Position numbers and translations under genes: made by a program. The notes under the pieces were generated by a model. That model was not told where the DNA came from. It saw only the letters and a program-made list of their open reading frames with translations, and searched no databases. Shown one piece after another: positions 29,569-64,000 of a stretch of DNA of 64,000 nt; positions within the stretch are counted from its first letter, which is position 1; every line of letters begins with the position of its first letter. The DNA comes from Macrostomum hystrix (lineage: Eukaryota > Animalia > Platyhelminthes), in assembly GCA_950097015.1 (NCBI GenBank), contig CATNEN010000038.1, positions 22,196,001 through 22,260,000 of the forward strand. Direction: 5' to 3'.

Positions 29569-32500
29569 TCAAAAATGTGTACTTTGATGAATCTCTGGCT
29601 GATCACGAAAAAGATCGCCCACAGCAACAATCTCAATGTAGTCAGTGCAGCTGTCACTGTCTGTGTCCTGCCTCTCCACAGCAGCACCAGCAGCAGCAGT
29701 CGCTGGTATGCTAACAATCAAGTAGCAGCACTCGGACTCGAAGCCGTTGGTTTTCTGAAATCAGAGAAGCCTTGAGCACTCATTCAGTTTCGGAAATGAA
29801 ACGGAAACACTACTGACAAGTAGCATTGTTGCCAAGTAGCCACTGTAGCCAAGTAGCCATTGTAGCCAAGTAGCCATTGTAGCCAAGTAGCCATTGTAGC
29901 CAAGTAGCCATTGTAGCCAAGTAGCCATTGTAGCCAAGTAGCCATTGTAGCCAAGTAGCCATTGTAGCCAAGTAGCCATTGTAGCCATTGTAGCCTTGTA
30001 GCCAAGTAGCCATTGCAGCCAAGTAGCCATTGTAGCCAAGTAGCCATTGTAGCCTTGTAGCCAAGTAGCCATTGCAGCCAAGTAGCCATTGTAGCCAAGT
30101 AGCCATTGTAGCCGAGTAGCTATTGTAGCCAAGTAGCCATTGCAGCCAAGTAGCCATTGTAGCCAAGTAGCCATTGTAGCCATTGTAGCCTTGTAGCCAA
30201 GTAGCCATTGCAGCCAAGTAGCCATTGTAGCCAAGTAGCCATTGTAGCCTTGTAGCCAAGTAGCCATTGTAGCCAAGTAGCCATTGCAGCCAAGTAGCCA
30301 TTGTAGCCAAGTAGCCATTGCAGCCAAGTAGCCATTGTAGCCAAGTAGCCATTGTAGCCCAGTAGCCACTGTAGCCAAGTAGCCATTGTAGCCAAGAAGC
30401 CGTTGTAGCCCAGTAGCCACCGTAGCCAAGTAGCCATTGTAGCCAAGTAGCCATTGTAGCCAAGTAGCCATTGTAGCCAAGTAGCCATTGTAGCCAAGTA
30501 GCCATTGTAGCCAAGTAGCCATTGTAGCCAAGTAGCCATTGTAGCCAAGTAGCCATTGTATCCAAGTAGCCATCGAGATTAATGGATAAGCAACGTGGCA
30601 TTTCTCGGACAGGACTGTCCCTGTTTGCTCGCTGAAGTCTAAGTGACTCGTTGACTCACCTAATTAGCAGGATGAGACACATCAGGTGACACTTTCGATT
30701 CCTCCTGAATGCCCGAGCTTAGGTTGAGCCCGGCTGCTGAAGGCTCAGTTGACGGCACTCGGAGCTGCAATGGAAAGGTTCAGAGCCGTCAGCTGCTGAA
30801 GTGCACGATCGCCACATTTTCCTGCACTGACCTTCGAGATGAGCAGAAAGCATGCAGCGCAGACGACAGACACAACAACGAAGACGATGATGGCTGAGAC
30901 AACAATCGTGAAAGTCGTGAGCCCAGCCCCAGGGCAGACGAGTCGAGCCGTGGTGTGAACAGGTGAGCCGACAGTCATGTTCTCAGGGAGGTTCTGTGAC
31001 GCACTGCAGTTGACAAAGACTTCGCTCCTGCTCATGTCATGCTCAACACCGCTGTCGAGCGACCACGTGCTAAGGAGGCTCCTGTTGTCTGGTACCTGAA
31101 GTTTCATATAGTACAGTGTGTTGCCACCAAGTCTTTCAAGAATCATACGGAATGCAACTCACCAGTGAAAGCCGAGAGACATTTTTTGTAGCCAAGTAGC
31201 CAAGTAGCCACTGTAGCCAAGTAGCCACTGTAGCCAAGTAGCCATTGTAGGCATGTAGCCATTTTTTCATTTGAGATACATTTTTTTCCTTGAGTTCGCC
31301 AGCTTGAAAGTTGCACGTGTGCTCAGGCATTGGGTGAGAAGCCGATGATCTGAACTGTACCGTTATTCTTGCCATGCTTTTGCAGCTTTCCAGGAATTTT
31401 ATCGATAGACTCGATGGCGGGTCTGGCGGGAATTTTGAGGTGCATTCATAAATTGCTGCTGAAGAATTTTTTATGAGGAGCAAATAGTAGAAATATTCTG
31501 GATGCTCACTCACACAGCACGTTGACTGGGGTCTGCGTCTGCACAGAGCCAAGGCTGCAAGAGTAATTTCCTGAGTGCTCAGGGAGTGCTCGAGCCACTG
31601 CTGTCTTGTGATCTTCAATGCAGGTACCGTTCGGAAGGCAGAGCTGGAGCCCGCTTGAGTTTGAGCACAGCATTGAGCTGTTGCAGTGCAGCTCGCATCT
31701 CACAGCGAAACTCGAGTTGACGGCCACAAACTGATCCGCGGAAGCCGCTGAAAAAATATTTTGACCAGCTTGTATGATAAACAGATATACAAATAGCGAT
31801 CGAATCCATTTTATGTGACTGAAGTCTCTGTGACGAGGTAAAGGCAGGATAGGAATCAAGTATCGATTTTCGTTGATGAGGAGCTAATTTCTCAACGATT
31901 TCATGAGTTCCATTAATCAGCATGATCGTTGAATTGGCTATTGGCGTTTCAATTGGCTTTGGGTGTTTGCTACCCTGTCCTGTCTGTTTTGCTGTCTGCT
32001 TACCTTGGATTCTTCACAGTCAGTTCTGACTTCGCTCTAATTCTATCTAATTCTCTACATTTTCCGCCTTCTGATTGGTCCGCCTCTCACTTTCTAGCCT
32101 CCTCTCTTACCCTCAGTCGCGCACTCTCTTGTTATCGCCACGCCAACCCCCTCCAGTCTGTCCAACTTAACCATGCGCATATTCGAGTCGTGTATAGCCA
32201 AGGACACAGCGCCCTGTCACTTTCGCTTCTCTTCTCTCCATTGGCTACCCGCAGGCCAGCTTAAAAAATTATTGCTTCTCTTAATTTCTCGACACTCCTT
32301 CCAAGCAAATCGGAAAATAACTCGAGCAATTCTCTATTATTCCTTATTGTGTTTAAATTGGCTTTCGGCTTTTCTAATTTAACTAATTTCCCCAGGCTAA
32401 CTTCTGCATTGTGCTATTTTTGACCGTTTGTCTAATTTGTCCGAGCTACGATTTGAAGGGTAAAAATGTCCCGCTTTCAGGCCCTTATAATTCTTTAAAA

Positions 32501-34267
32501 GAAAGTAGTAAATCTGCTCACAGAGCACGGTGACTGAGGTCAGCGTCTGCACAGAGTTAAGTCTGCAAGAGTACATTCCTGAGTGATCAGGCAGAGCTTG
32601 AGCCACTGCAGTCTTGTGATCTTTAATGCAGGTACCGTTCGGAATGCAGAGGTGGAGTCCGCTTGAGTTTGAGCACAGCATTGAGCTGTTGCAGTGCAGC
32701 TCGCATCTCACAGTGAAACTCGAGTTGACGGCCACAACCTGATCCTCGGAGGCCGCTGAAAAAATGTTTTGACCAGGTTGTATGATAAACAGATAAACAA
32801 ATAGCCCTTTCATGCCCTTGTTATTCTTTAAAAGTTATAAACAGTTATAAAAGTTCTTTAAATGTTATAAAATTGTAGAAAATCTGCTCACAGAGCACGG
32901 CGACTGAGGTCTGCTTGCTGACAGAGCCAAGTCTGCAAGAGTACATTCCAGAGTGATGAGGCAGAGCTTGAGCCACTGCTGTCTCATGTTCTGCAATGCA
33001 GGTACCGTTCGGAAGGCAGAGCTGGAGACCGCGAGAGTTGAAGCACATCCGAGAGTTGTTGCAGTGCATCTCGCAGCTCACAGAGAATCTCGACTTGAGG
33101 GCCAACACCTGATCTACTGAGGTGGCTGGAATATAAGTTACCATTGAAATTTCAAGCTCAACCTGTGCGTTTCCTGCTTGAGAAATTGCTTTAAAATTGA
33201 ACTCACTCAGTACACTGACAGGGGATGTTGCTGTAATTGATCCGAATCTGCACCTGTAGTCACCTGAGTGCTCAGGTTGAGCACTGCCAATGTGCAGCTC
33301 ATGGCCATTTATGCAGCTGCCGTTGGGAGAGCACAGCTGCAGCTCGCTTGAGCTCGAGTTGAGTTTTGCTCCTTTGCAGTCCAGCAAGCAGCTCACACTG
33401 AACTTTGAGCCCTGAGGCACCAGCTGAGGCGCTGAGTATCCTGGAGATTTACAAATCATCCAATTGACATTGTAGAATTTTCCTTCCACAACAATAGGTC
33501 CATAGTAAAAGACCCGAACTCACTCAGATACACAGTCTGAAGCCTGAGATCTGCGAAGCTCATGTAGTCCTCATTATTAGGCGACACAGAAATGTTCCTT
33601 CGCAGCAGCAAGTGTCTCACCTGGAGTTCAGATGAAATCTCAGTGGGATCCAGAACTCAACAGAGCACAACTCAAGGCACAGAGCAGGTCTCACCTCCGC
33701 TAAGCAGTTCACGGTGAAGATCTCACCAGCCTCGATACGCGCCTGCTTGCTCACCGTCAGGCCGCACCGTCTCCAGAGATGCTGAGACTCTCTGAACTGA
33801 CTGCTCATGTTTCTTGAGCTGCAGTGATCACCTGAGAACAGTTGTCTGTTGCTGCTCGATGTCCAGATCTCGATGTCTCTGGCTCTCGAGTAGAGATGTG
33901 TAGCGTCATCTAAAAGTGAGAACTTCACGACTAAGCAGTGGAAGCTGATTGCATGGAAAAAATAGGCCAGTGACTCACCCTCTCTGCCCTTCACAGTGAC
34001 TGATTTTATGAGTAATGGCCTACGCAGCCACAATGCGAACCAATGAAATCCTCCGTCTGCTTGGCTTCTGTCTTTGCTGTGGAAGAACGCGTAGCTGGGG
34101 ATAACATTTTCCTCTTCGGCAGAGCTTCTGCTGTTGAAGCAAGACATTCTTCCGCGGATAATCTCAAAGGACGACTGCCAGGAGTTATCGACATTGTACT
34201 TGCGAATCGGCAACTCACAGGCTGCAGTTGCCATGGAAACTTGCAGTGCCAGGATCAGCAGAAGCAT
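29569..34267 (-). CDS. Receptor copy 1: signal peptide, F-type lectin-like domain, 4 Ig exons, C2-like domain, TM, cytoplasmic tail (~760 aa)
   Basis: In-frame GT-AG exons 33979-34267, 33695-33909, 33524-33620; Ig exons 33207-33440, 32892-33125, 32522-32755, 31514-31747 (each 234 nt, phase 1, HSGxYxC); 31163-31458; TM exon 30832-31095; tail exons 30660-30764 (ends in TAG) or 29569-29754 (contains TDYIEI). Confidence 0.8.
29820..30572. repeat. 17-bp minisatellite (GTAGCCAAGTAGCCATT)n in last receptor intron; paralogues at 41237-42312 and 54312-54827
   Basis: Tandem units; array length differs between copies. Confidence 0.96.
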
Positions 34268-35121
34268 GGCCTTGGCCAGTTTGAGAATTTCAAAATCAGT
34301 GAAAAGTTGAGCTTCTGAAATGAACCCAGAAATTATAGCGGATTCGCTATGGCGTCCTATTTGAATGAATCGGTACCTGCGATATGATTTGATGATCCAG
34401 AGAGTAGCACTGTTCACAGCAAATCAAATAAAGGCACAATCTGCTTTATGTCGAAGCTTGGACCAAGTTGTGTTGCTGCCAGTTCATTTGTCTGCACTTG
34501 TTCTTTCTTGTTCTTTCTTTTTCTTGCTCGATAATATAGCTTTTTCAATCCTTTTTGGTTCTTTCTGCGTTCAAATTGGTGCGTGGCTGTCAGCAGTATG
34601 ACGTGGCAGCGGTGTCGGGATGTACCATAGAAGACAGAATCAATTCGGTAAAAACTGCGAGCACTTTAGGTCACATGGGGGAGGCATAGCCGAGACGAAG
34701 AATTGCGCAGAGGGGATGATACGCTAAGGGTCGGTCAGTCAGGCAAGCAGAAAGTGTTGTCTACGATAGATTTTTACTATCGGATTAAAACCCTTGCAAC
34801 AGACTGACAGATGCACGACATGTATACGATGAGTGCATAAAAATAAACGTGAATGACCAATACGGCTAACAATTTGGTGACTTGTGGTACCACTTCTTAA
34901 CGTCTCGGTGAATTTCGTGTTGTAAGGGTCAGTCATGACATCAGTTGCTTTTGATCCAGCACCACATTTTTGCACCAGCCGGATTATCGAAGCTTTCAAA
35001 GAAATGTTGCCTCCATTTGCACTGCTTCAGTGTTAGGATGCCAATAACGCACGCTTCTACTTCGTAAACTTCGTGGACACGGATTATGTCTACGTCTTCT
35101 GGCACATAATAATTATTATTA

Positions 35122-35861
35122 TTATTGAAATGCACACGCCGATTCGGGCAGGCTTTTTTGATTATTTAATGTTGGTTTCACATTCATGCGAAACCCAAGA
35201 TATGTCCACTGCTGTACGGATTCAACCAGTTGACCATGTAAAAACATTCTATGTGCTGCCCTTGAGTGGAGATTGCAGCTCAGAAGCTTTGTCTTCTCAG
35301 TGTTTATTTCTAATTTCTGAATATTGCTAAAATCTGCTACTTTGTGGTGGTTATCTTGTAATTCTGTCAGGTCTTCACCAAAAATGACCAAACCGTCACA
35401 ATCAAGCAGGTTTTTTAAAATACTTCTTCATTCAATATGGAGGTATGGCTTTGAAATGAGTTTTTTAGAATTGTGCTTAGCGGGTCGATGTATAGGGAGA
35501 ATAGCAGTGGAGATAGGGGGCATCCTTGTCTGACGCCATTAGTGATTCGACACGCCTCAGCAGCCGTGCTTTCTGACATCTTGAGGTGAAATTTCGCGCT
35601 TGAGTACATACTCTCAATGATGCTTATTATTGCTGGGTTCACGCCCAACTGCTTTAATCGTGTGACCAGGGTTGGGTGGTGAACCATGCCAAAGGTGCTT
35701 TTTAAATCAAAGAAAACTAAATGGAAAGGTTTTTTCTGTTTCTTCTTTTTATGAATTAATGTCAATAGGGTTGCGATGTGATCGGAAGTCCGGCAGCCTT
35801 TTCTGTTTCCAATTCGATATTGCAATTTCAACAATTGAAATGAGGAATGACAGATAAACAA
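35122..35861 (-). pseudogene. Degenerate non-LTR retrotransposon reverse transcriptase fragment
   Basis: LVFFDLKSTFGMV, GVRQGCPLSPLLFSLYID, LEINTEKTK, WTYLG; the YADD region is broken. Confidence 0.85.
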
Positions 35862-36179
35862 AGCTACACAAAATTATAACATGGTTAAGTAAAATAGCAG
35901 ATTTTAGGTAGCACTGTAAGAAAACAAACGAAAGTAGCGACCGATATTATGTTTTAGGTAATCTTTCGCTACCCAATTTTCCGTTACCAGATGGTCAGTT
36001 TCGATCGGTACCGCCATCACCGTTAATTTTTTGGTAACGCGCCTAACCCTGATTGCACCTTTGGGAGCTCATATCTGTTCGTAAAAACAAGTATATTAGA
36101 CTTGTTTCCACAGACAGTTTCACGCAGATGTTTTTCCCGCGGATTCTCTCCCACCGTGGAAAATCAGGAAAAGCTCGTC

Positions 36180-37368
36180 GGGAAAAGCTACTGCACTAAA
36201 AGCTCCTGCGGAAAAACCTTGTTATGGGAAAAGCTCGCACGGAAAAACCTTGTTATGGGAAAAGCTCGCACGGGAAAACCTAGTTGTGGGAAAAGCTCCT
36301 GCGGGAAAGCCTTGTTGTGGGAAAAGCTCCCACGGGAAAACGTTGTTATGGGAAAAGCTCGCACGGGAAAACCTAGTTGTGGGAAAAGCTCCTGCGGGAA
36401 AGCCTTGTTGTGGGAAAAGCTCCCACGGGAAAACGTTGTTGTGGGAAAAGCTCCTGCGGGAAAGCCTTGTTGTGGGAAAAGCTCCCACGGGAAAACGTTG
36501 TTGTGGGAAAAGCTCCCGCGGGAAAGCCTTGTCGTGGGAAAAGCTCGCACGGAAAAACCTTGTTATGGGAAAAGCTCGCACGGAAAAACCTTGTTATGGG
36601 AAAAGCTCCCGCGGGAAAGCCTTGTTGTGGGAAAAGCTCCTGCGGGAAAGCCTTGTTGTGGGAAAAGCTCCCACGGGAAAACGTTGTTGTGGGAAAAGCT
36701 CCTGCGGGAAAGCCTTGTTGTGGGAAAAGCTCCCGCGGGAAAACGTTGTTGTGGGAAAAGCCCCCGCGGGAAAGCCTTGTTGTGGGAAAAGCTCCCGCGG
36801 GAAAACCTTGTTGTGGGAAAAGCTCCCGCGGGAAAGCCTTGTTGTGGGAAAAGCTCCTGCGGGAAAGCCTTGTTGTGGGAAAAGCTCCTGCTGGAAACCT
36901 AGTTGTTGTGGGAAAAGCTCCCGCGGGAAAGCCTTGTTGCGGGAAAAGCTCCCGCGGGAAAACGTTGTTGTGGGAAAAGCTCGCACGGAAAAACGTTGTT
37001 GTGGGAAAAGCTCGCACGGGAAAACCTTGTTGTGGGAAAAGCTCCTGCTGGAAACCTAGTTGTGGGAAAAGCTCCTGCGGGAAAACGTTGTTGTGCGAAA
37101 AGCTCCCGCGGGAAAACCTTGTTGTGGGAAAAGCTCCTGCGGGAAAACCTTGTTGTGGGAAAAGCTCCTGCGGGAAAACCTTGTTGTGGGAAAAGCTTCT
37201 GCGGGAAAACCTTGTTGTGCGAAAAGCTCCCGCGGGAAAACCTTGTTGTGGGAAAAGCTCCTGCGGGAAAACCTAGTTGTGCGAAAAGCTCCCGGGGAAA
37301 ACGTTGTTGTGGGAAAAGCTCCTGCGGGAAAACCTAGTCGTGGGAAAAGCTCCTGCGGGAAAACCTTG
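36180..37368. repeat. 31-bp minisatellite (GGGAAAAGCTCCTGCGGGAAAACCTTGTTGT)n
   Basis: Tandem units; paralogue at 49222-50490. Confidence 0.96.
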
Positions 37369-37523
37369 GTGCTTTTAGAAGATCTTGCTGGCCTGGAAGA
37401 GACGGCATCAGAAATGTGATGAAACTGTATTGCGAATTAAAGTATTTGTATAGGCCCTAATTTGTGGGAAAGACTTGTATGGATCTAAAATACAGACATC
37501 CGATAAACTAATTGAGGTACTCA

Positions 37524-38218: not shown

Positions 38219-38647
38219 TTGGATATTTCTTGGATTGGCTCATTCTTAGCTGGTGTTCCGTTGCTATTAGGCCCGGTAACTTCGGTGCTGACTGATCGAT
38301 ACGGATGTCGATCTGTCACAATAGCCGGAGGCCTCATCTCCGGCTTGGGCTTTGTTTTAACCTTCTTTTTGCCGCGGAGCACTTTGCTGTTTATATTCTC
38401 GGCCGGATTATTGACTGGCTTAGGACTCGGCTTAGCCTTCATGCCAGCTGTTGTGGCCGTGTCCTGTTATTTCTTAGAAAGACGCGCTTTAGCCACAGGC
38501 CTAGCAATGTCCGGGTCTGGCGTTGGCACCGTTGTATTCGCCTACATCACCCGAGCTTGCATTGAAGAGTACACGTGGCAGGGCGGCTTCTTAATAATTG
38601 GCGGCATGCTGTTGAATCTATGCGTCTGCGGTGCTGTAGGCGAATGA
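38219..38647 (+). pseudogene. Orphan exon of an SLC16/monocarboxylate transporter (MFS)
   Basis: SWIGS...GPVTSVLTDRYGCRSVTIAGG...YFLERRALATGLAMSGSGVGT...YTWQGGFLIIGGMLLNLCVCGA; no other exons of this gene found in the window. Confidence 0.75.
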
Positions 38648-39199
38648 ATTTATAAGCTCTGAAATTCGCTGGTCTTTGTCATTTCATTGTCATCACAATA
38701 AAATAGCAAAACTTTGAAGCTGTAAACTATCATTTCTGCAATTTGACCATGAAACGATTGCAGCAGGTGCGAGCTCCACATCTTAAGCCAGCGATAAATT
38801 GTGTGTGATAAATAGAATACGTTCAAAGCCTATAATGTATGAGGCAGACCCGTTTTTAATACTGTACAATTTCAAACCAAATTGCCGCCAAAAACAATTT
38901 TTTCATTCGAGTGTTTGTTTGAATTGTTACGTGTCGCCCTTCCCCTTTGTGGACGGAAAACTAAATCCCTGATTTCTTAAAACTTTGATTTCCTTAATCG
39001 TTGATTTCCTAAATCTCTGATTTCCTAAGTCTCTGATTTCTTAAGTCTCTGATTTCCTAAATCCTTGATTTCTTAAATCGCTTATGTACAGGCGTAGTTA
39101 TCATTCATTTATTTACTCAATTTTTATTAATTAATTTATGTAGTTTTGACAGCGGGGTCAGACCCGATGCATTCTCGATTCTCGATCTACAATATCGAA

Positions 39200-39980
39200 G
39201 GGCTGGGTGCAGTATTGAAGGGCTGGGTGAAGAATCGAAGGGCTGGATGCAGTATTGTAGTGATGGGCGCAGTATTGTAGTGATGGGTGCAGTATTGTAG
39301 TGATGGGTGCAGTATTGTAGTGATGGGCGCAGTATTGTAGTGATGGGTGCAGTATTGTAGTGATGGGTGCAGTATTGTAGTGATGGGTGCAGTATTGTAG
39401 TGATGGGCGCAGTATTGTAGTGATGGGTGCAGTATTGTAGTGATGGGTGCAGTATTGTAGTGATGGGCGCAGTATTGTAGTGATGGGTGCAGTATTGTAG
39501 TGATGGGTGCAGTATTGTAGTGATGGGTGCAGTATTGTAGTGATGGGTGCAGTATTGTAGTGATGGGTGCAGTATTGTAGTGATGGGTGCAGTATTGTAG
39601 TGATGGGTGCAGTATTGTAGTGATGGGTGCAGTATTGTAGTGATGGGCGCAGTATTGTAGTGATGGGTGCAGTATTGTAGTGATGGGCGCAGTATTGTAG
39701 TGATGGGCGCAGTATTGTAGTGATGGGTGCAGTATTGTAGTGATGGGTGCAGTATTGTAGTGATGGGTGCAGTATTGTAGTGATGGGCGCAGTATTGTAG
39801 TGATGGGTGCAGTATTGTAGTGATGGGTGCAGTATTGTAGTGATGGGTGCAGTATTGTAGTGATGGGCGCAGTATTGTAGTGATGGGTGCAGTATTGTAG
39901 TGATGGGTGCAGTATTGTAGTGATGGGTGCAGTATTGTAGTGATGGGTGCAGTATTGTAGTGATGGGTGCAGTATTGAAG
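39200..39980. repeat. 20-bp minisatellite (GCAGTATTGTAGTGATGGGT)n; paralogues at 28352-28453 and 52655-53092
   Basis: Tandem units read directly. Confidence 0.96.
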
Positions 39981-40071
39981 GGTTTGAAGCAGAAAAAGGC
40001 CCAAATTTGTAAATCTATATATTCTGGGCCGGGCGAGACACCCACCTCAGCCCGCTGACTTGGACCTGGCA

Positions 40072-40282
40072 GCCTGGTGTACATAGCCAGGTGTACATAG
40101 CCAGGTGTACATAGCCAGGTGTTCATAGCCAGGTGTACATAGCCAGGGTGTACATAGCCAGGTGTACATAGCCAGATGTACATAGCCATGTGTATATTGC
40201 CAGGTGTACATAGCCAGGTGTACATAGCCAGGTGTACATAGCCACGTGTACATAGCCAGGTGTACATAGCCAGCTGTACATT
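40072..40282. repeat. 14-bp minisatellite (CCAGGTGTACATAG)n; paralogue 53184-53365, single unit at ~28853
   Basis: Tandem units read directly. Confidence 0.93.
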
Positions 40283-41017
40283 CAGTGATACGAGATAATG
40301 GTAAACAACGGCATATACGCGGCGCACTACAGTTGTTATTGATAATCACCAGGTTCTGTTAAGTAAGTTTGCTCACATATTTTGCTTGGTACAGTTGAGT
40401 AGGGTGAGTGCTTTGAATAAATTTGAATAAGAGAAACTGCACATAAAATATTATTTCCGCTACAGTCAGTAGAGTATTGTAGAGTTTTGTAGATTCCGTT
40501 TTAAATTTCTGCATTTGATGAGGAGTGGCCCATTGAACTTATGCTTCTGGTTAGAGTGTATTTTAATATATTTATTAAGCAATACTTGAGAACAGTAATT
40601 AGAACAGTTTATGACGCATTTTCGCATGCTTGAATGGCAGTCAGTCTGGGTGCAAAAAGCAGAGAAAATTCAGACAGAATCGTCTAAGGAAACTGGGCTT
40701 CTACGAGCTATGATATGATAAGAACATTTTTGGGACTGTCTGCCCAGCTACTGTAATAAATAGGCTGAGGTGACAACCAGATAGACATATTTGAGTCTTG
40801 AACATATTCTGCATGGATAATTGATCAGCCACTAGTGAGAGCAAAACAAATGAACGAACAGTTTCTTTTATTATTGATTGATTATGATAAATTAATTCAC
40901 AGAATATGAAATTCAAATTCATCTACTCCAGCTTAATAATCAGAATTGCAAAGCTATGCAAGAATTTCAAGCTCTAAAATCACTCAAAAATGTGCAGTGT
41001 GATGAATCTCTGGCTGA

Positions 41018-51670: not shown

Positions 51671-52099
51671 TTGGATATTTCTTGGATTGGCTCATTCTTA
51701 GCTGGTGTTCCGTTGCTATTAGGCCCGGTAACTTCGGTGCTGATTGATCGATACGGATGTCGATCTGTTACAATAGCCGGGGGCCCCATATCCGGCTTGG
51801 GCTTTGTTTTAACCTTCTTTTTGCCGCGGAGCACTTTGCTGTTTATATTCTCGGCCGGATTATTGACTGGCTTAGGACTCGGCTTAGCCTTCATGCCAGC
51901 TGTTGTGGCCGTGTCCTGTTATTTCTTAGAAAGACGCGCTTTAGCCACAGGCCTAGCAATGTCCGGGTCTGGCGTTGGCACCGTTGTATTCGCCTACATC
52001 ACCCGAGCTTGCATTGAAGAGTACACGTGGCAGGGCGGCTTCTTAATAATTGGCGGCATGCTGTTGAATCTATGCGTCTGCGGTGCTGTAGGCGAATGA
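51671..52099 (+). pseudogene. Orphan SLC16/MCT exon (unit 2 copy)
   Basis: As 38219-38647, with T>I and an L>P substitution in a predicted TM segment. Confidence 0.75.
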
Positions 52100-54067
52100 A
52101 TTTATAAGCTCTGAAATTCGCTGGTCTTTGTCATTTCATTGTCATCACAATAAAATAGCAAAACTTTGAAGCTGTAAACTATCATTTCTGCAATTTGACC
52201 ATGAAACGATTGCAGCAGGTGCGAGCTCCACATCTTAAGCCAGCGATAAATTGTGTGTGATAAATAGAATACGTTCAAAGCCTATAATGTATGAGGCAGA
52301 CCCGTTTTTAATACTGTACAATTTCAAACCAAATTGCCGCCAAAAACAATTTTTTCATTCGAGTGTTTGTTTGAATTGTTACGTGTCGCCCTTCCCCTTT
52401 GTGGACGGAAAACTAAATCCCAGATTTCTTAAAACTTTGATTTCCTTAATCGTTGATTTCCTAAATCTCTGATTTCCTAAGTCTCTGATTTCTTAAGTCT
52501 CTGATTTCCTAAATCCTTGATTTCTTAAATCGCTTATGTACAGGCGTTGTTATCATTCATTTATTTACTCAATTTTTATTAATTAATTTATGTAGTTTTG
52601 ACAGCGGGGTCAGACCCGATGCATTCTCGATTCTCGATCTACAATATCGAAGGGCTTGGTGCAGTATTGAAGGGCTGGGTGAAGTATCGAAGGGCTGGAT
52701 GCAGTATTGTAGTGATGGGCGCAGTATTGTAGTGATGGGTGCAGTATTGTAGTGATGGGCGCAGTATTGTAGTGATGGGTGCAGTATTGTAGTGATGGGT
52801 GCAGTATTGTAGTGAGGGGTGCAGTATTGTAGTGAGGGGTGCAGTATTGTAGTGATAGGTGCAGTATTGTAGTGATGGGTGCAGTATTGTAGTGATGGGT
52901 GCAGTATTGTAGTGATGGGTGCAGTATTGTAGTGATGGGTGCAGTATTGTAGTGATGGGTGCAGTATTGTAGTGATGGGTGCAGTATTGTAGTGATGGGT
53001 GCAGTATTGTAGTGATGGGTGCAGTATTGTAGTGATGGGTGCAGTATTGTAGTGATGGGTGCAGTATTGTAGTGATGGGTGCAGTATTGAAGGGTTTGAA
53101 GCAGAGAAAGGCCCAAATTTGTAAATCTATATATTCTGGGCCGGGCGAGACACCCACCTCAGCCCGCTGACTTGGACCTGGCAGCCAGGTGTACATAGGC
53201 AGGTGAACATAGCCAGGTGTTCATAGCCAGGTGTACATAGCCAGGGTGTACATTGCCAGATGTACATAGCCAGGTGTACATAGCCAGGTGTACATGGCCG
53301 GGTGTACATAGCCAGGTGTACATAGCCAGGTGTACATAGCCAGGTGTACATAGCCAGGTGTACATTCAGTGATACGAGATATTGGTAAACAACGGCATAT
53401 ACGCGGCGCACTACAGTTGCTATTGATAATCAGCAGGTGCTGTTAAGTAAGTTTGCTCACAGTTTTGCTTGGTACAGTTGAGTAGGGTGAGTGCTTTGAA
53501 TAAATTTGAATAGGGAAAACTGCACATAAAATATTATTTGCGCTACAGTCAGAAGAGTATTGTAGAGTTTTGTAGATTCCGTTTTAAATTTCTGCATTTG
53601 ATGAGGAGTGGCCCATTGAACTCATGCTTCTGGTTAGAGTGTATTTTAATATATTTATTAAGCAATACTTGAGAACAGTAATTAGAACAGTTTATGACGC
53701 ATTTTCGCATGCTTGAATGGCAGTCAGTCTGGGTGCAAAAAGCAGAGAAATTTCAGACAGAATCGTCTAAGGAAACTGGGCTTCTACGAGCTATGATATG
53801 ATAAGAACATTTTTGGGACTGTCTGCCCAGCTACTGTAATAAATTGGCTGAGGTGACAACCAGATAGACATATTTGAGTCTTGAACATATTCTGCATGAA
53901 TAATTGATCAGCCACTAGTGAGAGCAAAAACTAATGAACGAACAGTTTCTTTTATTATTGATTAATTACGATGAATTAATTCACAGAATATGAAATTCAA
54001 ATTCATCTACTCCAGCTTAATAATCAGAATTGCAAAGCTAGGCAAGAATTTCGAGCTCAAAAATCAC

Positions 54068-57000
54068 TCAAAAATGTGTACTTTGATGAATCTCTGGCTG
54101 ATCACGAAAAAGATCGCCCACAGCAACAATCTCAATGTAGTCAGTGCAGCTGTCACTGTCTGTGTCCTGCCCCTCCACAGCAGCACCAGCAGCAGCAGTC
54201 GCTGGTATGCTAACAATCAAGTAGCAGCACTCGGACTCGAAGCCGTTCGTTTTCTGAAATCAGAGCAGCCTTGAGCACTCATTCAGTTTCGGAAATGAAA
54301 CGGGAAATAAAAGCCATTGTAGCCAAGTAGCCATTGTTGCCAAGTAGCCATTGTAGCCGAGTAGCCATTGTAGCCAAGTAGCCATTGTAGCCAAGTAGCC
54401 ATTGTAGCCGAGTAGCCATTGTAGCCAAGTAGCCATTGTAGCCGAGTAGCTATTGTAGCCAAGTAGCCATTGCAGCCAAGTAGCCATTGTAGCCAAGTAG
54501 CCATTGTAGCCCAGTAGCCACTGTAGCCAAGTAGCCATTGTAGCCAAGTGGCCATTGTAGCCAAGTAGCCATTGTAGCCAAGTGGCCATTGTAGCCAAGT
54601 AGCCATTGTAGCCAAGTAGCCACTGTAGCCGAGTAGCTATTGTAGCCAAGTAGCCATTGCAGCCAAGTAGCCATTGTAGCCAAGTAGCCATTGTAGCCCA
54701 GTAGCCACTGTAGCCAAGTAGCCATTGTAGCCAAGTGGCCACTGTAGCCAAGTAGCCATTGTAGCCAAGTAGCCACTGTAGCCAAGTAGCCACTGTAGCC
54801 AAGTAGCCATTGTAGCCAAGTAGCCATCGAGATTAATGGATAAGCAACGTGGCATTTCTCGGACAGGACTGTCCCTGTTTGCTCGCTGAAGTCTAAGTGA
54901 CTCGTTGACTCACCTAATTAGCAGGATGAGACACCTCAGGTGACACTTTAGATTCCTCCTGAATGCCTGAGCTTAGGTTGAGCCCGGCTGCTGAAGGCTC
55001 AGTTGACGGCACTCGGAGCTGCAATGGAAAGATTCAGAGCCGTCAGCTGCTGAAGTGCACGATCGCCACATTTTCCTGCACTGACCTTCGAGATGAGCAG
55101 AAAGCATGCAGCGCAGACGACTGGCACAACAACCAAAACGATGATGGCTAAGACAGCAATTGTTTTCGTTGTTGCAGTCGTGAAAGTCGTGAGCCCAGCC
55201 CCAGGGCAGTCGAGTCGAGCCGTGGTGTAAACAGGTGAGCCGAAAGTCATGTTCTCAGGGAGGATCTGTGCCGCACTGCAGTTGACAAAGACTTCGCTCC
55301 TGCTCATGTCATGCTCAACACCGCTGTCGAGCGACCACGTGCTAAGGAGGCTCCTGTTGTCTGGCACCTGCAGTTTCATATAGTACAGTGAGTTGCGACC
55401 AAGTCTTTCAAGAATCATACGGAATGCAACTCACCTGTGCAAGCAGAGAGACATTTCTTTCTTTGAGTTCGCCAGCTTGAAAATTGCACGTGTGCTCAGG
55501 CATTGGGTGAGAAGCCGATGATCTGAACTGTACCGTTATTCTTGCCATGCTTTTGCAGCTTTCCAGGAACTTTATCGTTAGACTCGATGGCGGGTCTGGC
55601 GGGAATTTTGAGGTGCATTCATAAATTGCTGCTGAAGAATTTTTTATGAGGAGCAAATAGTAGAAATATTCTGGATGCTCACTCACACAGCACGTTGACT
55701 GGGGTCTGCGTCTGCACAGAGCCAAGGCTGCAAGAGTAATTTCCTGAGTGCTCAGGGAGTGCTCGAGCCACTGCTGTCTTGTGATCTTCAATGCAGGTAC
55801 CGTTCGGAAGGCATAGCTCAAGAAACCTAAGAAGCGAGCCCCATTGGCTTGAGTATGAGCACAGCATTGAGCTATTGCAGTGCAGCTCGCATCTCACAGC
55901 GAAACTCGAGTTGACGGCCACAAACTGATCCGCGGAGGCCGCTGAAAAAATTATTTTGACCAGCTTGTATGATAAACAGATAAACAAATTGCGATCGAAT
56001 GCATTTTATGTGACTGATATCTCTGTGACGAGTAAATGGTACGGATGCACTCAAAGGTATTGGAATCTAGTATCTATTATCGTTGATGTGGAGCGTGTTT
56101 ATCAACGAGTTCATGAGTTCCATGAGTCCTAGTTGATGTTCAAATTGGCTATTGGCGTTTCAATTGACTTGGCTTTTTGCCAACATGCCCGTGGACATTG
56201 TGTCAGTCGAGTTTTTGTGCTGTGGGCATTGTGTCAGTTGAGGATTTGTGCTGTGGTCATTGCGTCAGTTGAGGTTTGGTGCTGTGGTCATTGTGTCAGT
56301 TGAGGTTTTGTGCTGTGGGCATTGTGTCAGTTGAGGTTTTGTGCTGTGGCCATTGTGTCAGTTGAGGTTTTGTGCTGTGGTCATTGTGTCAGTTGAGGTT
56401 TTGTGCTGTGGTCATTGTGTCAGTTGAGGTTTTGTGCTGTGGTCATTGTGTCAGTTGAGGTTTTGTGCTGTGGTCATTGTGTCAGTTGAGGTTTTGTGCT
56501 GTGGTCATTGTGTCACAAGTGTCACTCTTTCAGCGCAATCGACATCACGAAGCACCCTCTTGGTGTCCCTGTTTCGTGGATTGAGGAGAATCGTAAGCAG
56601 TGCTCCAATGCAATCGCAGGTGCAGTTCTTCTTAATAAGCTGCTCTGCATCCATGGTGCCATTGTTGAGAGCAACCGAGAAGCTTCTCTTGCTGGGCTGC
56701 AATTCTCTGCCGAGGTTTTTGGAAGCTGCTTCACAATGCTCGTCTGTTTCCAAAATCAAGGTTATATAGCAGCGTAATTTACTTTTGACCTATTTAAAGT
56801 TATATTGTAGCTCACAAATCAATCCTTCTTTTGTTTTAGTGTTTCTACACCATTGACACCTTTGCTTATACCATTGAATATGATTATTTCTCTTAAATCC
56901 ATTATTGTGTTTGCATTCAGCTTTCGGCCTTCGTCATTGGATGAATTTCCCTTGACCAGTTTCTGCTTTATGGTTTTCATTGTTTCACTAATAGGTCCAA

Positions 57001-60000
57001 GCGACAATTTGAAGTGTAAAAATGTCCCGCTTTCAGTCCCTTATTATTCTTTAAAAGTTATAAACAAAGTAGAAAATCTGCTCACAGAGCACGGCGACTG
57101 AGGTCTGCTTGCTGACAGAGCCAAGTCTGCAAGAGTACTTTCCAGAGTGATCAGGCAGAGCTTGAGCCACTGCAGTCTTGTGTTCGGCAATGCAGGTACC
57201 GTTCGGAAGGCAGAGCTGGAGCCCGCTTGAGTTTGAGCACAGCATTGAGCTGTTGCAGTGTAGCTCGCATCTCACAGCGAAACTCGAGTTGACGGCCACA
57301 AACTGATCCGCGGAGGCCGCTGAAAAAATATTTTGACCAGCTTGTATGATAAACAGTAAAACAAATTGCGATCGAGTGCATTTTATGTGACTGAAGTCTC
57401 TGTGACGAGGTAAAGGAAGGATAGGAATCAAGTATCGATTGCTCGCACCGGCGGGACACAGTGCCTGTGAGGTATGAGTCAGTCCAGGCCCACGGGCTAT
57501 GGTCTGCGATGCCTCACACCTGCAGCCGTTTTTTGAGCAGGCTTGGCAGGAAGGAGACCTGTGCCTCCGGGTGCAGGAATCCCTCCACGCTGTACCGTCA
57601 GCTGACCCATGGGTACACGTCCCGCGAGTGTTCAAGGCTGACCCTAGGGCAGCCGGACAGAATGGGCAACAGCGCTGGATGACCCATCCAGGGCCTCCGG
57701 CCTAACTGGGTACCTCTAGCCCCGGCTGGAGGGAAAGGTGTCACCCTTTGACCTTAACAGGGTATGCGGCCAGTCCGCAGCGTTCGTGCACCTGTGCGTG
57801 ATCAGGTACCTCTGGCTACGGCTCTGAGGGAAAGGTGTCACCCTTTGACCTTAACAGGGTATGCGGCCAGTCCGCAGGCCTCGGCGCTGGCCAAATAGCG
57901 CCCTCTAATGTCCCAGTGTTGACCGTGCTGATGGACGCTTGACCAGGGAGTAGTCTGGCCTCCTACGGTTCCTCCCGGTGGTCCTGGCATCCCACCCCGG
58001 GTTGTAACTTGTCTTTTTTGGCTGCCCCCGCTCAGCTTTGGGATCGCGGCTGAGCGGGTTATTCCTGCCTGTGTCTACAGGAAGCCCCTCTCCTCATTGC
58101 AGCTTCTAATGGCTTCCAGCCTTCCAACTGCTCCGGCCGAGGACACCATGGTGCCCGAGGCCATACACGCTGCGGCGCCCGGGCTAGCTGGCCCCGCGAC
58201 CGCCACAAATGCCGCGCTGCCCAACTCGCGCGATGACCGGGGCGCTAAGCGCTCCTCAACCTCTGGAGCGGCAAAGCGTCGTAGGCGCTTAATGGCCCAC
58301 GGCAAGCCGGCTCCATCGACCGAGGACCGGGCCCAGGCCAGAGGGGCCGAAGGGGCTCTGCCTAGGGCGGGGGCTGGGGCGGGGGGCCTTGCGCCTCCTG
58401 CCCAGGCTCCTGCACGGGGCGGAGCCCACGACGCCCCGAGGCCAGGGTCGCGGGCCAAGGAGGTCCCGGCGCCCATCCGGACGGCGGCTCGGCCTGAAGG
58501 AGAAGCGGAGGCAGAGGGCCCTGTGCCCACCGCCGACGCTGATCCCGAGGGTGGGGTCGCCACCGGACAGGGCCCGGGACCACATGCCACCTACGCCGCC
58601 ATCGCACGTAGGCAACCTGCCGTTGTCATCACCGGCAGAGACGGAAAAAGGCTGAGCAGCGAACAGCTCAGCAACATTTGCCGCAACATAGATGCTATGC
58701 TGTGGCAACTTCAACTGAAGGGCGAGCCCCTGGCGGTCGGCGCAAGCGCTACCAGGGAATCGTGCTTCGTCGTCTGGCCCGGCGACGCGGAATCAGGGCG
58801 GCGGCTCCTTGAGTTGCTGCCCACGCAGAGCTGGGCGGCTGGCCTCGACTTCCTCCGGGAGAACGAGCCACCAAAGACCAAGCGACACCGCATTTTCGTC
58901 CCGGCGAAAAGTGTCGTCACCAGCGCTGAGGACCTCCGCATGGGCCTCATCGCGATGAACCGGGAGCTGCCGACAGCGGGCCTGATCGTGCACCGCACGA
59001 TCCTGCGCCCCGATGGCACCGGGTTCACCGCCATTCTGGGCCTGTCCGAGCAATGGACACGCCGATACCCAGATGGCGCCAACATCTGCATTGGTCTGTG
59101 GAAGACCAAAATCTTCGCCTTCGAGGCAGATAAAACTCGAGGTCAGACCGGGCCCACCACCGTACCGGCCACTGAAGGGTCCTCGGACCCCGAGGTTGGG
59201 ACTGGGGGCAGGGCCCAGTCGTCTCGCCAAAAAAGGCCAGAGCGTGCCATCGCTGGCAGCTCTGAGCGTCGCCCCGCGCGCATTACAAAGCGCCGGGGCC
59301 TTCTCCAGCGGGCCTCCGAGGTGGTGCGAACCGCCAGGATGGCCCAGCTGCGCGCTGAGATGCGCGGTGGCCCACCGGGGCAAGCGCCGCAACCAAGGGC
59401 TACGGGGGAGGCCTCTAAGGTGCCCAGCTCCATCGAGCAGGGCCCTTCGAGCGCCCCTCCCACGGCCCAGGGTGCGGTGTCGGCACCGGTTGAGGGTGAC
59501 TCTGGGCCTGGGCTCGGGGCCGGGGGTGGGGACTGGGCGGCTGACCCCGTCGAGTTCCCGCCTCTGGCTCGGGGCCGGGGCACGGAGGAGCCCATGGCTA
59601 CCGACATCGACCCGGAGGAGGAGGACCGCCTTCTGGCTGAGTCCCCCTCCAAGTAGACCTCTGTCTGCATGATGATCCCCGGAATATCATGCCTGCAAGT
59701 TAACACCCAGCACTGCGTGGCAGCATCAGTCAATCTGATGCGCATGACAGAGCGCACGATGCCGGGCCTTGTACTTGTGCAGGAGCCCTGGTTATCAAAA
59801 AACAAGCCAAGTAACATTCCTGCTGGCTATGACTGCTTCTGCATGGCAGACTCTGTCCGCCCTAGATCACTGATCTATGCTGCAAAAGCCTTAAATGCGT
59901 GGATGAGACCCGATCTCTCTAACGGGGACATCTGCGTCATCCAATCTGCACACATTGTGCCCAACAAGTTGACCCTCGTGGCATCCGCCTACCTGGCAGG

Positions 60001-63000
60001 CGACGCCCCTGTGGTCAGCGATACCCTCGTCGCCCTCTGTGATTTCGCCAGGGCACGAAATTTTGAGCTGCTCCTCGCGGGAGATGTTAACTCGCATCAC
60101 ACCCACTGGGGTAGCTCAAAAATCAATGACCGCGGCGAAGAGCTCCTGGCCTTCGTCAGCGGCACGCCTCTTAACTTCTGCAATGTGGGCAACACGCCCA
60201 CGTTCGACAATGGGCGGTGGGCTGAGGTGCTTGACGTCACCCTGGCCTCACCCGGCATCCTCCCAAGGGTGCTGGGGTGGGAGGTGTGGGAGACCGAAAG
60301 CTCGCTCTCGGACCACCGCTTCATTCGCTTCAACATCGGTACCCCCGATAAGAAGCAAAAGCCTATTTGGAGGCGTAATGTCAGAAACACCGACTGGCCC
60401 GTGTTCAGCCAAAAGCTGCATGAGGGCCTTCGGGATTCCGACCCCTCCATGGCCATGGCAACCACGCAGGACCTAGATGGAGTGGCTGCCCTGCTGGGCG
60501 GCGCCATCACAGAGGCCTACGAAATGGCTTGCCCGCTCAAAGCCTACAAAGGCAAAAAATTGGCCCCCTGGTGGAACCCCGAGCTCGGAGTCCTGAGACG
60601 CCGAGCAAAGGCTCTCCAGAGGAGGATGAAAATCTCGCACGACCCTGATGACAAAGAGGCCTATACTCGCGCCATCCATGAGTTGAAGGGCCGGGTCAGA
60701 AGGGCAAAAGCGGACAAGTGGCGACAATACTGCGAAGGGCTTGAGGGCTCGCGGCCCACGGCCCGCGTGGTAAAGGCGCTCACCAACGACCGCTTCTCCA
60801 AGCTCTCATCGATCAAAAAGCCAGACGGCTCGATCACGGAGCGCCCGGAGGAAACGCTCGAGCTTATGCTAGGGCATTTCTTCCCGAGTGTACCGGCGCA
60901 CTTTGGCCCAGACGACCACTCACGTGGAGGTCAGGGCCTGGCTCAGTCACTCGTCACGAATGACCGCATCGTTCGCGCGGCAAAGTCATTCAACCCTTTC
61001 AAAGCACCTGGGCCAGATGGTATTTATCCGGCCTTTTTGCATGAAGCGGTCAAAAATGGCCGCTTCCTCCATCTCCTCTGCAGACTTCTACGGGCCTGCA
61101 TCGTGCTGGGCTATGTACCAGCGCTGTGGCACGAAGCCCGGGTCGTCTTCATCCCGAAGCCCGCCAAAGGCGACTATCGCTCGGTCAAGTCCTATCGCCC
61201 GATAAGTTTGACTTCCACCTGCCTCAAGCTCATGGAAAGACTGGTGCTCTGGCGCCTTCTTACTGTAGAGCTAGGGCGGGCCCCGCTCTCACCAAACCAG
61301 CACGCCTTTCGGGCGGGCCGGTCCACGGAGAGCGCCCTCCACTGCATCGTGGAGACTCTCGAGAAGGCAGTGCTGAGCAGCGGTTTTGCCCTGGCTGTCT
61401 TCCTAGACATTGAGGGGGCCTTCGATAACGTTGTTTTCGAAGCTTTTGAGGAGGCCCTGGTCTCCAGGGCCACTCACCCCCACCTCGTTCGCTGGGTCAT
61501 GTACATGATCCGGCATCGCCACGTGGTGGCCCACCTCGAAGGAAGGCTGCTCTCGGCACCTGTCCTAAAAGGAGGGCCCCAAGGCGGCGTCCTCACCCCA
61601 CTGCTGTGGAATCTCGTCATGGATGAGCTGCTGAAAAGCACTCGTCCAGACCCAGTCCTGAAGGTGGGATATGCCGACGATGTGACCGCCATCTGCGCGG
61701 GCCCCTCGGCGGAAACCACCAGAGACCTCATCCAGGGCTTTATCAACAGGGCGGTGCGCTGGGCGGACCAATGCGGGCTCCGACTCTCTGAGTCCAAGAC
61801 CGTTGCGGTTATGTTTACCAGCAAACTGCTCTGGACCATTGAGCCTCTGACTCTCTATGGCAAGAATATTGCCATGGAAAAGCAGGTCCGGTGCCTTGGT
61901 CTCGTGCTAGACCATAGGCTTAACTGGACCCCACACATCACCACAAAGGCCAAGAGGGCCCTGGCCATACTGGCGCAAGTCAGGCGTGCCGTGGGCACCA
62001 CTTGGGGGCTAACCCCCAAGAACCTTTGGTGGATTTACACGGCGATCATTAGACCGTCCGTCGCTTACGCTGGCCTCATCTGGGCCAGCGCCATGAGAAT
62101 CCAGAAAAACCTGGAGGCGCTTTATAGGGTGCAGGGCAGAGCCTGTCGTATGACGCTGGGCGCCCCACCCTCCACTCCCTTCGAAGGCATGAATGCTTTC
62201 CTCAACGCTACACCCATTGACATTTTCGTCAAGGGGGAAGCAGCAAAGTCCACCCGTCGTCTTCTTGATGCGGGTGTATCCTTCCAGAATTCGCGAGCCT
62301 TCTCGAAGCGCTCCCTTCTGCCTCACTCTGACCTCTGCCTGAAAACTCTGGGCGAGTGCGGAGGGCTCACCATCCTTTCGGACGGGGCCCCGGCTACTTT
62401 ACTCCGGAGCCACAGGTACAAAGTCAGCATCTCCCCTCGTAATGAGGTAAAGGACTGCTGGGATGACCCGGCAGTCCACTGTTACACTGACGGCTCTCTG
62501 ATGAACGGTAAATCGGGATTCGGAGTGTGCGTCGCCTCGGGTGGTGAGGTCCTCTGGACCCACTCCCAATACTGTGGCAAGAGCTCTAGCGTTTTCCAAA
62601 ACGAAGTGCTCGCCATCAGCTTCTGTGCGGCTGAGCTGCGCCAGAGGCAGCTGGCTGGTCGGAGGATCTTCTTTCACTCCGACAGTCAAGCAGCCCTCAA
62701 GGCCCTCAGCCGCTGCACCTCTCGCTCCAGAACCACCTTGGACTGCAACACCCAGTTAAACGGGTTGGCGCAGTCTAACAAGGTGGAGCTGCTGTGGATC
62801 CCTGGGCATGCCGGGTTCACAGGGAATGAGATGGCGGACCAGCTTGCTAAGGCTGGAGCAGCCAGCTCCCTGATGGGCCCGGGCCCGGAGTCCCCGATCC
62901 CCATCTCAGTTGTCAACTCCAGCATCAACTGCTGGATGGAGACCCAGCACCGGAGGAGGTGGTCCAGCACCCTGAACTGTCGCCAGTCCAGGGCTGCGGT

Positions 63001-64000
63001 GCCAACCCCCTCTAGTAACCTGCGTAAGGCCTTACTCAGGCTTAACCGCAGAGACCTAAGAGCAGTCACTATGGCTCTTTCGGGACATGGCTGCTTCACC
63101 AGACACCGCTACCTTCAAGGCCACGTGCCTGAGGAAACGTGTCCCTTCTGCTGCTCCGGACGCGAAAATGCAGAGCATTTCATCTGCCACTGCCCGGCCT
63201 TCACCCGGGCCAGGCTAAAACATCTCGGGCCGGCACCGACTCTCGCCGAAGCCTGCTCGCCCGAGAACATCCCACAGCTCGCCCACTTCCTCCGGGATAC
63301 CGGCCGAGCTGATTTCTTCCCAGCCTATGGCGAGGAAGATCGCGCGGCGGAATCGACCGACGGACCACCCTGAGCGGCACCGCCTCGCTGGAGGCTGTCT
63401 GGCTGCCAGGGGTTAGCGATATGGGCGGCATCTGCCGCCTCCTCGCTGCGTCCGTCATGGAGGCTCCCTGCCGCTAAGTCAAGTAAGTCAAGACTTCGCT
63501 TTAATTCAATCTAGTTCTCTACATTTTCGGCCTTCTGATTGGTCCGCCTCTCACTTTCTAGCCTCCTCTCTTACCCTCAGTCGCGCACTCTCTTGTTATC
63601 GCCACGCCAACCCCCTCCAGTCTGTCCAACTTAACCATGCGCATATTCGAGTCGTGTATAGCCAAGGGCACAGCGCCCTGTCACTTTCGCTTCTCTTCTC
63701 TCCATTGGATACCCGCAGACCAACTTAAAAAATTATTGCTTCTCTTAATTTCTCGACACTCCTTCCAAGCAATTCGGAAAAAAACTCGAGCAATTCCCTA
63801 TTATTCATTTTTGTGCTTTAATTGGCTTTCGGCCTTTATACTTAAGCTTAATTCCCCAGGCTCACTTCTGCATTCTGCTATTTTTTACCGTTGGTCTAAT
63901 TTGTCCGAGCTACGATTTGTGAAGTGTAAAAGGTCCCGCTTTCAGGCACTTATAAGTCTTTAAAATTTTGTAAACAAAGAAGAAAATCTGCTCACAGAGC
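54068..64000 (-). CDS. Receptor copy 3 (3' part; 5' exons lie beyond the window)
   Basis: Tail exon 54068-54253; TM exon ~55086-55367 with a 6-aa stalk insertion; uninterrupted C2 exon ([13 protein letters not shown]); Ig exons 55687-55941 (255 nt) and 57086-57319; another Ig exon donor at ~63994. Confidence 0.75.
56195..56515. repeat. 31-bp minisatellite (GTGCTGTGGTCATTGTGTCAGTTGAGGTTTT)n, unique to copy 3
   Basis: Tandem units read directly. Confidence 0.94.
58109..59656 (+). CDS. LINE ORF1 (gag-like; central region resembles DUF4780-type ORF1s)
   Basis: Open frame upstream of ORF2; first ATG at 58109; low-complexity ends around a globular core. The domain call is from recall. Confidence 0.75.
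   Translation: MASSLPTAPAEDTMVPEAIHAAAPGLAGPATATNAALPNSRDDRGAKRSSTSGAAKRRRRLMAHGKPAPSTEDRAQARGAEGALPRAGAGAGGLAPPAQAPARGGAHDAPRPGSRAKEVPAPIRTAARPEGEAEAEGPVPTADADPEGGVATGQGPGPHATYAAIARRQPAVVITGRDGKRLSSEQLSNICRNIDAMLWQLQLKGEPLAVGASATRESCFVVWPGDAESGRRLLELLPTQSWAAGLDFLRENEPPKTKRHRIFVPAKSVVTSAEDLRMGLIAMNRELPTAGLIVHRTILRPDGTGFTAILGLSEQWTRRYPDGANICIGLWKTKIFAFEADKTRGQTGPTTVPATEGSSDPEVGTGGRAQSSRQKRPERAIAGSSERRPARITKRRGLLQRASEVVRTARMAQLRAEMRGGPPGQAPQPRATGEASKVPSSIEQGPSSAPPTAQGAVSAPVEGDSGPGLGAGGGDWAADPVEFPPLARGRGTEEPMATDIDPEEEDRLLAESPSK
59669..63373 (+). CDS. LINE ORF2: APE endonuclease, reverse transcriptase, RNase H, C-terminal CCHC
   Basis: LVQEPW, GDVNSHH, SDHRFI; [41 protein letters not shown]; [32 protein letters not shown]; CPFC...EHFICHC. 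Uninterrupted 1234 aa. Confidence 0.97.

Follow-up and report, generated by a model that had tools for sequence, protein, structure and literature searches.

A multigene family of putative recognition receptors in Macrostomum flatworms, with a jelly-roll head, a variable Ig stalk and a tyrosine tail behind a stop-bearing exon

Introduction

Siglecs such as CD22 carry a distal lectin-type head on a variable stalk of C2-type immunoglobulin (Ig) domains, followed by one transmembrane (TM) helix and by tyrosine motifs of the ITIM or ITSM type (immunoreceptor tyrosine-based inhibitory or switch motifs), and their genes lie in tandem clusters. Here we study genes with the same layout in the flatworm Macrostomum hystrix, found on the minus strand of a 64,000-nucleotide stretch of its genome (GenBank assembly GCA_950097015.1, 220 Mb in 42 contigs; contig CATNEN010000038.1, positions 22,196,001 to 22,260,000). 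We call this whole stretch the window; the genes run from about 28.8 kb to its end. A preliminary description, made from the letters of the DNA, had read them as Siglec-like receptors with an F-type lectin head. The likeness to Siglecs is one of layout only, with no homology beyond the Ig modules: Siglecs have at their head a V-set Ig domain whose Arg binds sialic acid, whereas the flatworm head is modelled as a jelly roll, and in this flatworm clade a stop codon precedes the tyrosine tail.

Other described families share parts of the design. The FREP, CREP and GREP proteins of molluscs, like the flatworm receptors, join Ig superfamily and lectin-type domains in diversified multigene families of a lophotrochozoan; they are secreted, with N-terminal Ig domains and a fibrinogen, C-type or galectin domain. 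The discoidin domain receptors DDR1/2 bind collagen and carry a kinase domain, Drosophila Furrowed has CTLD and CCP modules, and both differ from the flatworm receptors in lacking Ig stalks, mini-tails with tyrosine motifs and large tandem expansions. To our knowledge, no families of diversified surface immune-type or recognition receptors have been described in flatworms.

For the head, the closest comparison is with F-type lectins, including eel agglutinin (AAA, 1K12), striped bass FBP32 (3CQO) and lectinolysin. Their diagnostic fucose motif is HX24RXDX4(R/K), and their domain features include the h2DGx cation motif and a vicinal disulfide, Cys82-Cys83 (PMC5712786). Two reviews of these lectins name CTLD, pentraxin, CCP, TM and FA58C as partner domains; Ig is not among them. 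In oyster sperm bindin, an F-lectin, recombination, alternative splicing and positive selection vary the sequence and the number of repeats (PMC12221842). Unlike the flatworm receptors, bindin is acrosomal and secreted, is encoded by a single-copy gene and consists of tandem F-type lectin domains, with no Ig domain, TM helix or tail.

From exon structure, spliced RNA contigs, fold models and homologue searches, we consider it rather probable that the window encodes cell-surface recognition receptors of a Macrostomum-restricted multigene family, each with a jelly-roll head, an Ig stalk of variable length, a TM helix and a short tail.

Gene model and splicing

The window holds three receptor copies (A, B and C), all on the minus strand and about 13 kb apart. 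They belong to a tandem duplication that repeats about every 13.1 kb, has units 94-99% identical to one another and runs from about 28.8 kb to the window's end. An assembly artefact behind copies A and B, which are 99% identical, is unlikely because the number of Ig exons and the length of an insertion differ between them. The peptide motifs first used to recognise the genes (SWQSS, FFHS, HWFALWL, IKSVTVKGRE, DDATHLYSR and FTVNC) are present on the minus strand in both A and B. Paralogues had been claimed for all three duplication units, and the copies are indeed there; the third head, at about 64646-65381, lies outside the window behind a long interspersed nuclear element (LINE), and copy B is frame-shifted. 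The parts of the three copies are as follows, all on the minus strand.

29569-34267, copy A: open through all exons, splice sites intact
33979-34267, copy A exon 1: ATG at 34267, signal peptide and first half of the head (WQSS, CF, FFHS, GFHWF, KGRE), ending in phase 1
33695-33909, copy A exon 2: second part of the head (D97, R105, IEIWTSS, HC, W..CG, FTVNC)
33524-33620, copy A exon 3: final two head strands (VRHLLLRR ... YMSFADLRLQ)
31514-33440, copy A Ig stalk: 234-nt phase 1-1 exons at 33440-33207, 33125-32892, 32755-32522 and 31747-31514
31163-31422, copy A membrane-proximal exon a: 260 nt, with a 99-nt in-frame insertion
30832-31095, copy A membrane-proximal exon b with the TM helix
30660-30764, copy A cytoplasmic cassette exon: 105 nt, phase 0-0, last codon an in-frame TAG (30662-30660)
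29569-29754, copy A last exon: CCYLIV (YLIV at 29724-29713), TDYIEI (29646-29629), stop at 29571-29569
40984-47368, copy B: probably broken by a frame shift
47368-47080, 47010-46796 and 46721-46625, copy B head exons 1, 2 and 3
46541, 46226, 45856, 44848, 44477 and 43469, starts of the six copy B Ig exons
43144-42902, copy B membrane-proximal exon a: 82-nt frame-shifting insertion
42834-42571, copy B TM exon
42503-42399, copy B cassette exon, with TAG
about 41170-40984, copy B tail exon (TDYIEI at 41062-41045)
54068-57319, copy C, part in the window; the head and a further pair of Ig exons are found at about 63997-65381, mostly past the window
57319-57086 and 55941-55687 (255 nt), copy C Ig exons
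55595-55435, copy C membrane-proximal exon a: the ancestral 161 nt
about 55367-55086, copy C TM exon
55018-54914, copy C cassette exon, with TAG
54253-54068, copy C tail exon (TDYIEI at 54145-54128)

The encoded protein runs from a signal peptide through a head of about 185 amino acids (three exons), the Ig exons, a membrane-proximal domain and a TM helix to the tail. Every exon border in copy A is AG/GT and the phases are compatible, which bears out the type I membrane protein of the preliminary description; its length, put there at about 760 amino acids, comes in a local frame check to 748 without the 105-nt cassette or 721 with the cassette and ending at its TAG. Exons were searched singly (two open in-frame introns read through), and joined exons were used only for length and stop count. 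The last intron of copy A is filled by a 17-bp minisatellite at about 29790-30600.

Splicing is visible in contigs from four public runs, which we aligned to 30620-34400, beside this minisatellite. Contigs at least 99% identical to copy A exons are present, and the gaps in their alignments coincide exactly with the predicted introns and have CT..AC ends on the plus strand, equivalent to GT..AG on the gene strand; the junctions drawn from sequence are in this respect confirmed. The joints are 33979/33909 (69 nt), 33695/33620 (74 nt), 33524/33440, 33207/33125, 32892/32755, 31514/31422 and 30832/30764, with further support from a joint near 31163/31095 and from one contig across 31213-31327. Other joints skip one or two Ig exons (33207 to 32755, 32892 to 31747, 32892 to 31422 and 32522 to 31422), and these come from alternative splicing or from paralogues that have different sets of exons, two cases that look the same in the contigs.

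The 69-nt intron 1 (33910-33978) is open and in frame, and we rejected it as coding sequence: M. lignano homologues and the RNA contigs do not have it, and paralogues carry stops inside it. The M. lignano proteins lack its 23 residues, with matches that break at query positions 99 and 124. This intron splits the codon of D97 as G|AT, so the triad H63-x31-R95-E-D97-x7-R105 of the copy A head exists only once exons 1 and 2 are joined, as had been proposed.

The head domain

We modelled the head on a homologue, P0002 (61% identical), with a family alignment as input that joins 13 proteins of M. lignano or metagenome origin with 91 translated exons of paralogues in the M. hystrix assembly. The head reaches a pLDDT of 70-96 and is predicted to adopt the discoidin/F-type jelly roll, as the preliminary description had anticipated. 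Among Protein Data Bank (PDB) structures, the best Foldseek match to the model is the striped-bass F-lectin 3cqo (E 1.3e-5), followed by an F5/8C domain, eel agglutinin 1k12 and the lectin domain of lectinolysin. When the family profile is run against the whole PDB at E <= 10, two matches appear, both to animal F-type lectins and both non-significant (E 0.36 and 0.53). In the ESM Atlas, language-model features give the head of P0014 a score of 0.95 with its nearest clusters, those of F5/8C, fucolectin and 'F-type lectin 2'.

The profile alignment with eel agglutinin sets R95-x-D97 on R79-x-D81, R105 on R86 (with a 3-residue insertion) and the following E-I on E91-I92, while H63 falls 5 residues ahead of His52 in the HMMER ungapped stretch. 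The QSS first strand and the helices ahead of the His are further likenesses to F-type lectins. H63, R95 and R105 are kept in 86-91% of family members, a degree of conservation that fits a functional pocket as judged from the alignment, and structural core residues are invariant across 46 members. The differences from F-type lectins lie in the spacing of the triad, in a head about 45 residues longer and fused to Ig modules and a TM anchor, and in the conserved cysteines, which here are C43, C149, C168 and C188. Five M. lignano homologues give F5_F8_type_C matches over the same stretch (E 0.008-0.44, 11-17 bits), all under the 28-bit cut-off, so neither F5_F8_type_C nor F5_F8_type_C_2 assigns the family to the F-type lectins by Pfam. 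The F-type lectin head of the preliminary description therefore holds as to fold and nominal best match, and does not hold as to motif spacing, h2DGx and Pfam thresholds. The model makes the head a discoidin/F-type jelly roll nearest to F-type lectins, divergent from them and best called F-type-like, with membership in the family unproven.

The Ig stalk and the membrane-proximal region

The stalk was described as a row of 78-amino-acid Ig modules, and each of these is indeed a single exon of 78 codons (234 nt, phase 1-1). There are four in copy A and six in copy B, where the two extra exons arose by a 1.38-kb internal duplication. An AF2 model of the window's own Ig exon at 32893-33123, built with 38 related modules aligned, has a pLDDT of 87, and its top Foldseek matches are LAG3 D3-4, Sidekick-2, FGFR2 Ig-C2 and NCAM2 (E 5e-4 to 2e-3). 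In the 38 modules C17, S58-G59 and C63 are invariant; the Pfam Ig_2 match (E 7e-4) is below cut-off. On this model the stalk modules are C2/I-type Ig domains, with the beta-sandwich, the B-F disulfide and the D/S-G-x-Y-x-C F strand of the Ig superfamily.

Membrane-proximal exon a distinguishes the three copies. The 99-nt in-frame insertion of copy A derives from the 17-bp minisatellite (GGCTACTTGGCTACAAT type) of the gene's own last intron, the 82-nt insertion of copy B comes from the same minisatellite and shifts the frame, and copy C has none; copy C also has the 255-nt Ig exon and six additional codons in its TM exon. Copy A looks intact; copy B, unless rescued by a cryptic donor, is probably defective. 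Pfam has no match for the membrane-proximal exons or for the tail exon.

The cytoplasmic tail

YLIV and TDYIEI, the tyrosine motifs on which the idea of an ITSM-type tail was based, are present in all three copies. In the one mRNA form seen, an in-frame TAG comes before the exon that carries them: contigs hold the 105-nt cassette 30764-30660 and then run into the start of the tail exon, with loose ends at 30660. The cassette ends in AAT TAG|GT in 14 of the 16 paralogues found by DNA, among them copies A (30660-30764), B (42399-42503) and C (54914-55018). The other two, on contig C8, have GAG in place of TAG, and one contig of run X1 (organism A, maybe another species) reads through the cassette into the tail. 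Because 14 paralogues have the TAG in common, it is older than their spread, and the family expanded in spite of it.

The tyrosine tail itself is ancient, as judged from protein comparisons, because the segment and the motif are kept in M. lignano: in P0001 the equivalent stretch is in frame and leads into ECSYLSV and TVYLEIV, and the distant P0022 ends in TEYLDIV. The TxYxxI motif is kept between species at 33-55% head identity. Of the 14 copies in the M. hystrix assembly whose tail exon is fully covered, 10 keep it open through TDYIEIVAV and 4 have it disrupted; the divergence of this exon is too low for a test of constraint. Skipping the cassette would restore the tail, because the cassette is symmetric (phase 0-0), and use of an inner donor in it, AAA|GTGTCA, would do the same; neither form occurs among the contigs aligned to 30620-34400, a stretch that ends before the tail exon. 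A search for homologous proteins with the TM exon, made to show which tail follows the TM helix, gave no match. Siglec-like tyrosine signalling is doubtful for the window copies because the cassette with its in-frame TAG precedes the tail exon.

Family size, range and diversity

The head has at least 109 matches in the assembly, clustered on C38, C8, C5, C31, C3 and others, and the three-exon head with tiny introns recurs at about 40 loci. Among 1.8 billion protein representatives we find 15 matches. Fourteen are M. lignano proteins, which are 33-66% identical and carry unrelated automatic names, and the fifteenth (P0011) is encoded on a metagenome contig. As far as public proteins go, the family appears restricted to Macrostomum flatworms. 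None of the publications searched links Macrostomum with such a family, and the architecture is absent from the protein names searched, in line with the preliminary description, which knew of no described family of this kind. The genome also holds divergent head subfamilies (37-57% identity) with Ig exons of their own: L031, L032, L048 and L049 on C8 (3.16-3.20 Mb and 2.89 Mb) and L033-L040 on C5.

We computed nucleotide diversity among 18 paralogues of the C38 clade, with the following values.

Exon 1: 0.165
Intron 1: 0.059
Exon 2: 0.048
Intron 2: 0.018
Exon 3: 0.125
Intron 3: 0.068
Ig1 exon: 0.062

Head exons 1 and 3 carry most of the diversity, 2-7 times that of the flanking introns, and the exons on either side of intron 2 have 3-7 times its diversity. 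The pairwise dN/dS of the three head exons is 0.92, 1.30 and 1.18, and modelled loops have 1.22 against 0.88 for strands and helices; gene conversion among paralogues makes such pairwise values unreliable, and they are not decisive. The data fit a head that diversifies against a homogenised background, with positive selection unproven. Separately, head intron 2 (33621-33694 in copy A) is exactly 74 nt long in all 18 of the compared paralogues (among L001-L024) and near-invariant in sequence, which could be due to gene conversion or to a constraint from splicing.

Discussion

If these genes do encode recognition receptors, we would expect the conserved His63, Arg95 and Arg105 to line a pocket in which the head binds an extracellular ligand, with a glycan as the likeliest candidate; head exons 1 and 3 would be the parts that diversify between paralogues. 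The main product in the window clade would then end in a 35-residue tail without tyrosine, since the mRNA seen holds the TAG cassette, and production of the ancient T-x-Y-[IL]-[ED]-I-V tail would require skipping of the cassette or use of the inner donor. An immune or self/non-self role, as suggested in the preliminary description, is at this point conjecture.

Several observations weigh against this picture. The head fold was modelled on the homologue P0002 and not on the spliced protein of the window, and as structural matches F-type lectins, CBM32 and discoidin domains score within one Z unit of each other. The window's head exons find no match in Pfam even at E <= 10, the head fails the strict HX24RXDX4(R/K) spacing, and the family alignment has neither a conserved DG (the h2DGx calcium motif) nor a CC pair. 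The run contigs are of unrecorded type and paralogues are indistinguishable in them, the TM-to-tail junction is visible through loose ends alone in the cassette-holding mRNA, and a dN/dS of about 1 (0.9-1.3) fits relaxed constraint equally well.

How do other explanations fare on the same evidence? The receptors might be true fucose-binding F-type lectins that signal through phosphorylated ITSM (TDYIEI) to SH2 phosphatases or adaptors, as analogues of inhibitory Siglecs. The conserved basic residues of the triad, the alignment of R-x-D...R with eel agglutinin, the nominally top rank of F-type lectins among structural matches and the retention of TxYxxI across species all speak for this, as does the GAG cassette that reads into the tail in the two C8 paralogues and the X1 contig. 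We nevertheless think it unlikely: the x31/x7 spacing and the missing vicinal Cys pair and calcium motif argue against fucose binding, and in 14 of 16 paralogues, the three window copies included, the exon joined to the tail in RNA carries the TAG, while the tail exon itself is disrupted in 4 of 14 fully covered copies. About as tentative is the idea of a germline-diversified recognition system, directed at pathogens, mates or self/non-self, in which diverse head exons that contact the ligand are maintained against a gene conversion that homogenises the introns, shuffling of Ig exons varies the length of the stalk, and the symmetric stop cassette switches signalling on or off per transcript. 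Were it true, the logic of paired receptors, one ectodomain with the tail on or off, would be realised by splicing instead of by separate genes.

The concentration of diversity in head exons 1 and 3 would also be expected of adhesion or mating and gamete recognition molecules, with a head under sexual conflict in these hermaphrodites and signalling secondary; a module number that varies through recombination and exon skipping, the restriction to one genus and the same combination of features in oyster bindin (PMC12221842) point the same way. Bindins, however, are secreted acrosomal proteins and not TM receptors, dN/dS is just about 1, and a search of papers for the M. lignano gene identifiers, made for data on tissue expression, came back empty, so we consider this explanation improbable. 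More improbable still is that the window copies are decaying by-products of a recent segmental duplication, transcribed and functionless, with the real function in other members. The frame-shifting minisatellite insertion in copy B, the intronic LINE of copy C and its in-frame insertions in an Ig exon and the TM exon, the TAG ahead of the tail, the dN/dS about 1 and the very young age implied by units 94-99% identical could all be read as decay. Against this, copy A is open in all exons with intact splice sites and is matched in the runs by contigs at least 99% identical to its exons, the core residues of the fold do not vary among the 46 members, and a TAG common to 14 paralogues is older than their spread.

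Taken as recognition receptors, these proteins would make a large, genus-restricted and fast-diversifying family with lectin-type head, Ig stalk and tyrosine tail, and with it a new independent case of the Siglec or paired-receptor design. The stop-bearing cassette offers a concrete and testable mechanism for turning a signalling tail on or off, and M. lignano is a laboratory model with RNAi and transgenesis in which a role in immunity or mating is directly testable.

Other features of the window

The LINE of copy C is 5.3 kb long, lies antisense within an intron of that gene and is no part of the receptor. It is GC-rich (60-65%), with an open ORF1 of 519 amino acids and an open ORF2 of 1234 amino acids (APE endonuclease, reverse transcriptase and RNase H).

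58097-63373, plus strand, LINE retrotransposon: ORF1 at 58097-59656; ORF2 at 59669-63373, with endonuclease, reverse transcriptase and RNase H

Each duplication unit also has a reverse-transcriptase fragment (RVT_1, E 1.3e-15; 35415-35861 and 48517-48963, minus strand). An exon similar to MFS or monocarboxylate transporters (Pfam MFS_1, E 2.5e-16) lies at 38219-38647 and 51671-52099 on the plus strand, between the receptor copies and opposite to them, and was duplicated along with the unit. Minisatellite arrays with a 31-bp unit occupy 36100-37400 and 49100-50490, and arrays with a 20-bp unit 39120-40330 and 52610-53400; further arrays lie at 824-1801, 2153-3011, 3412-4428, 8655-9584 and 10089-11343. 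Several of the minisatellites give rise to long spurious ORFs on both strands, and array lengths vary among the duplication units.

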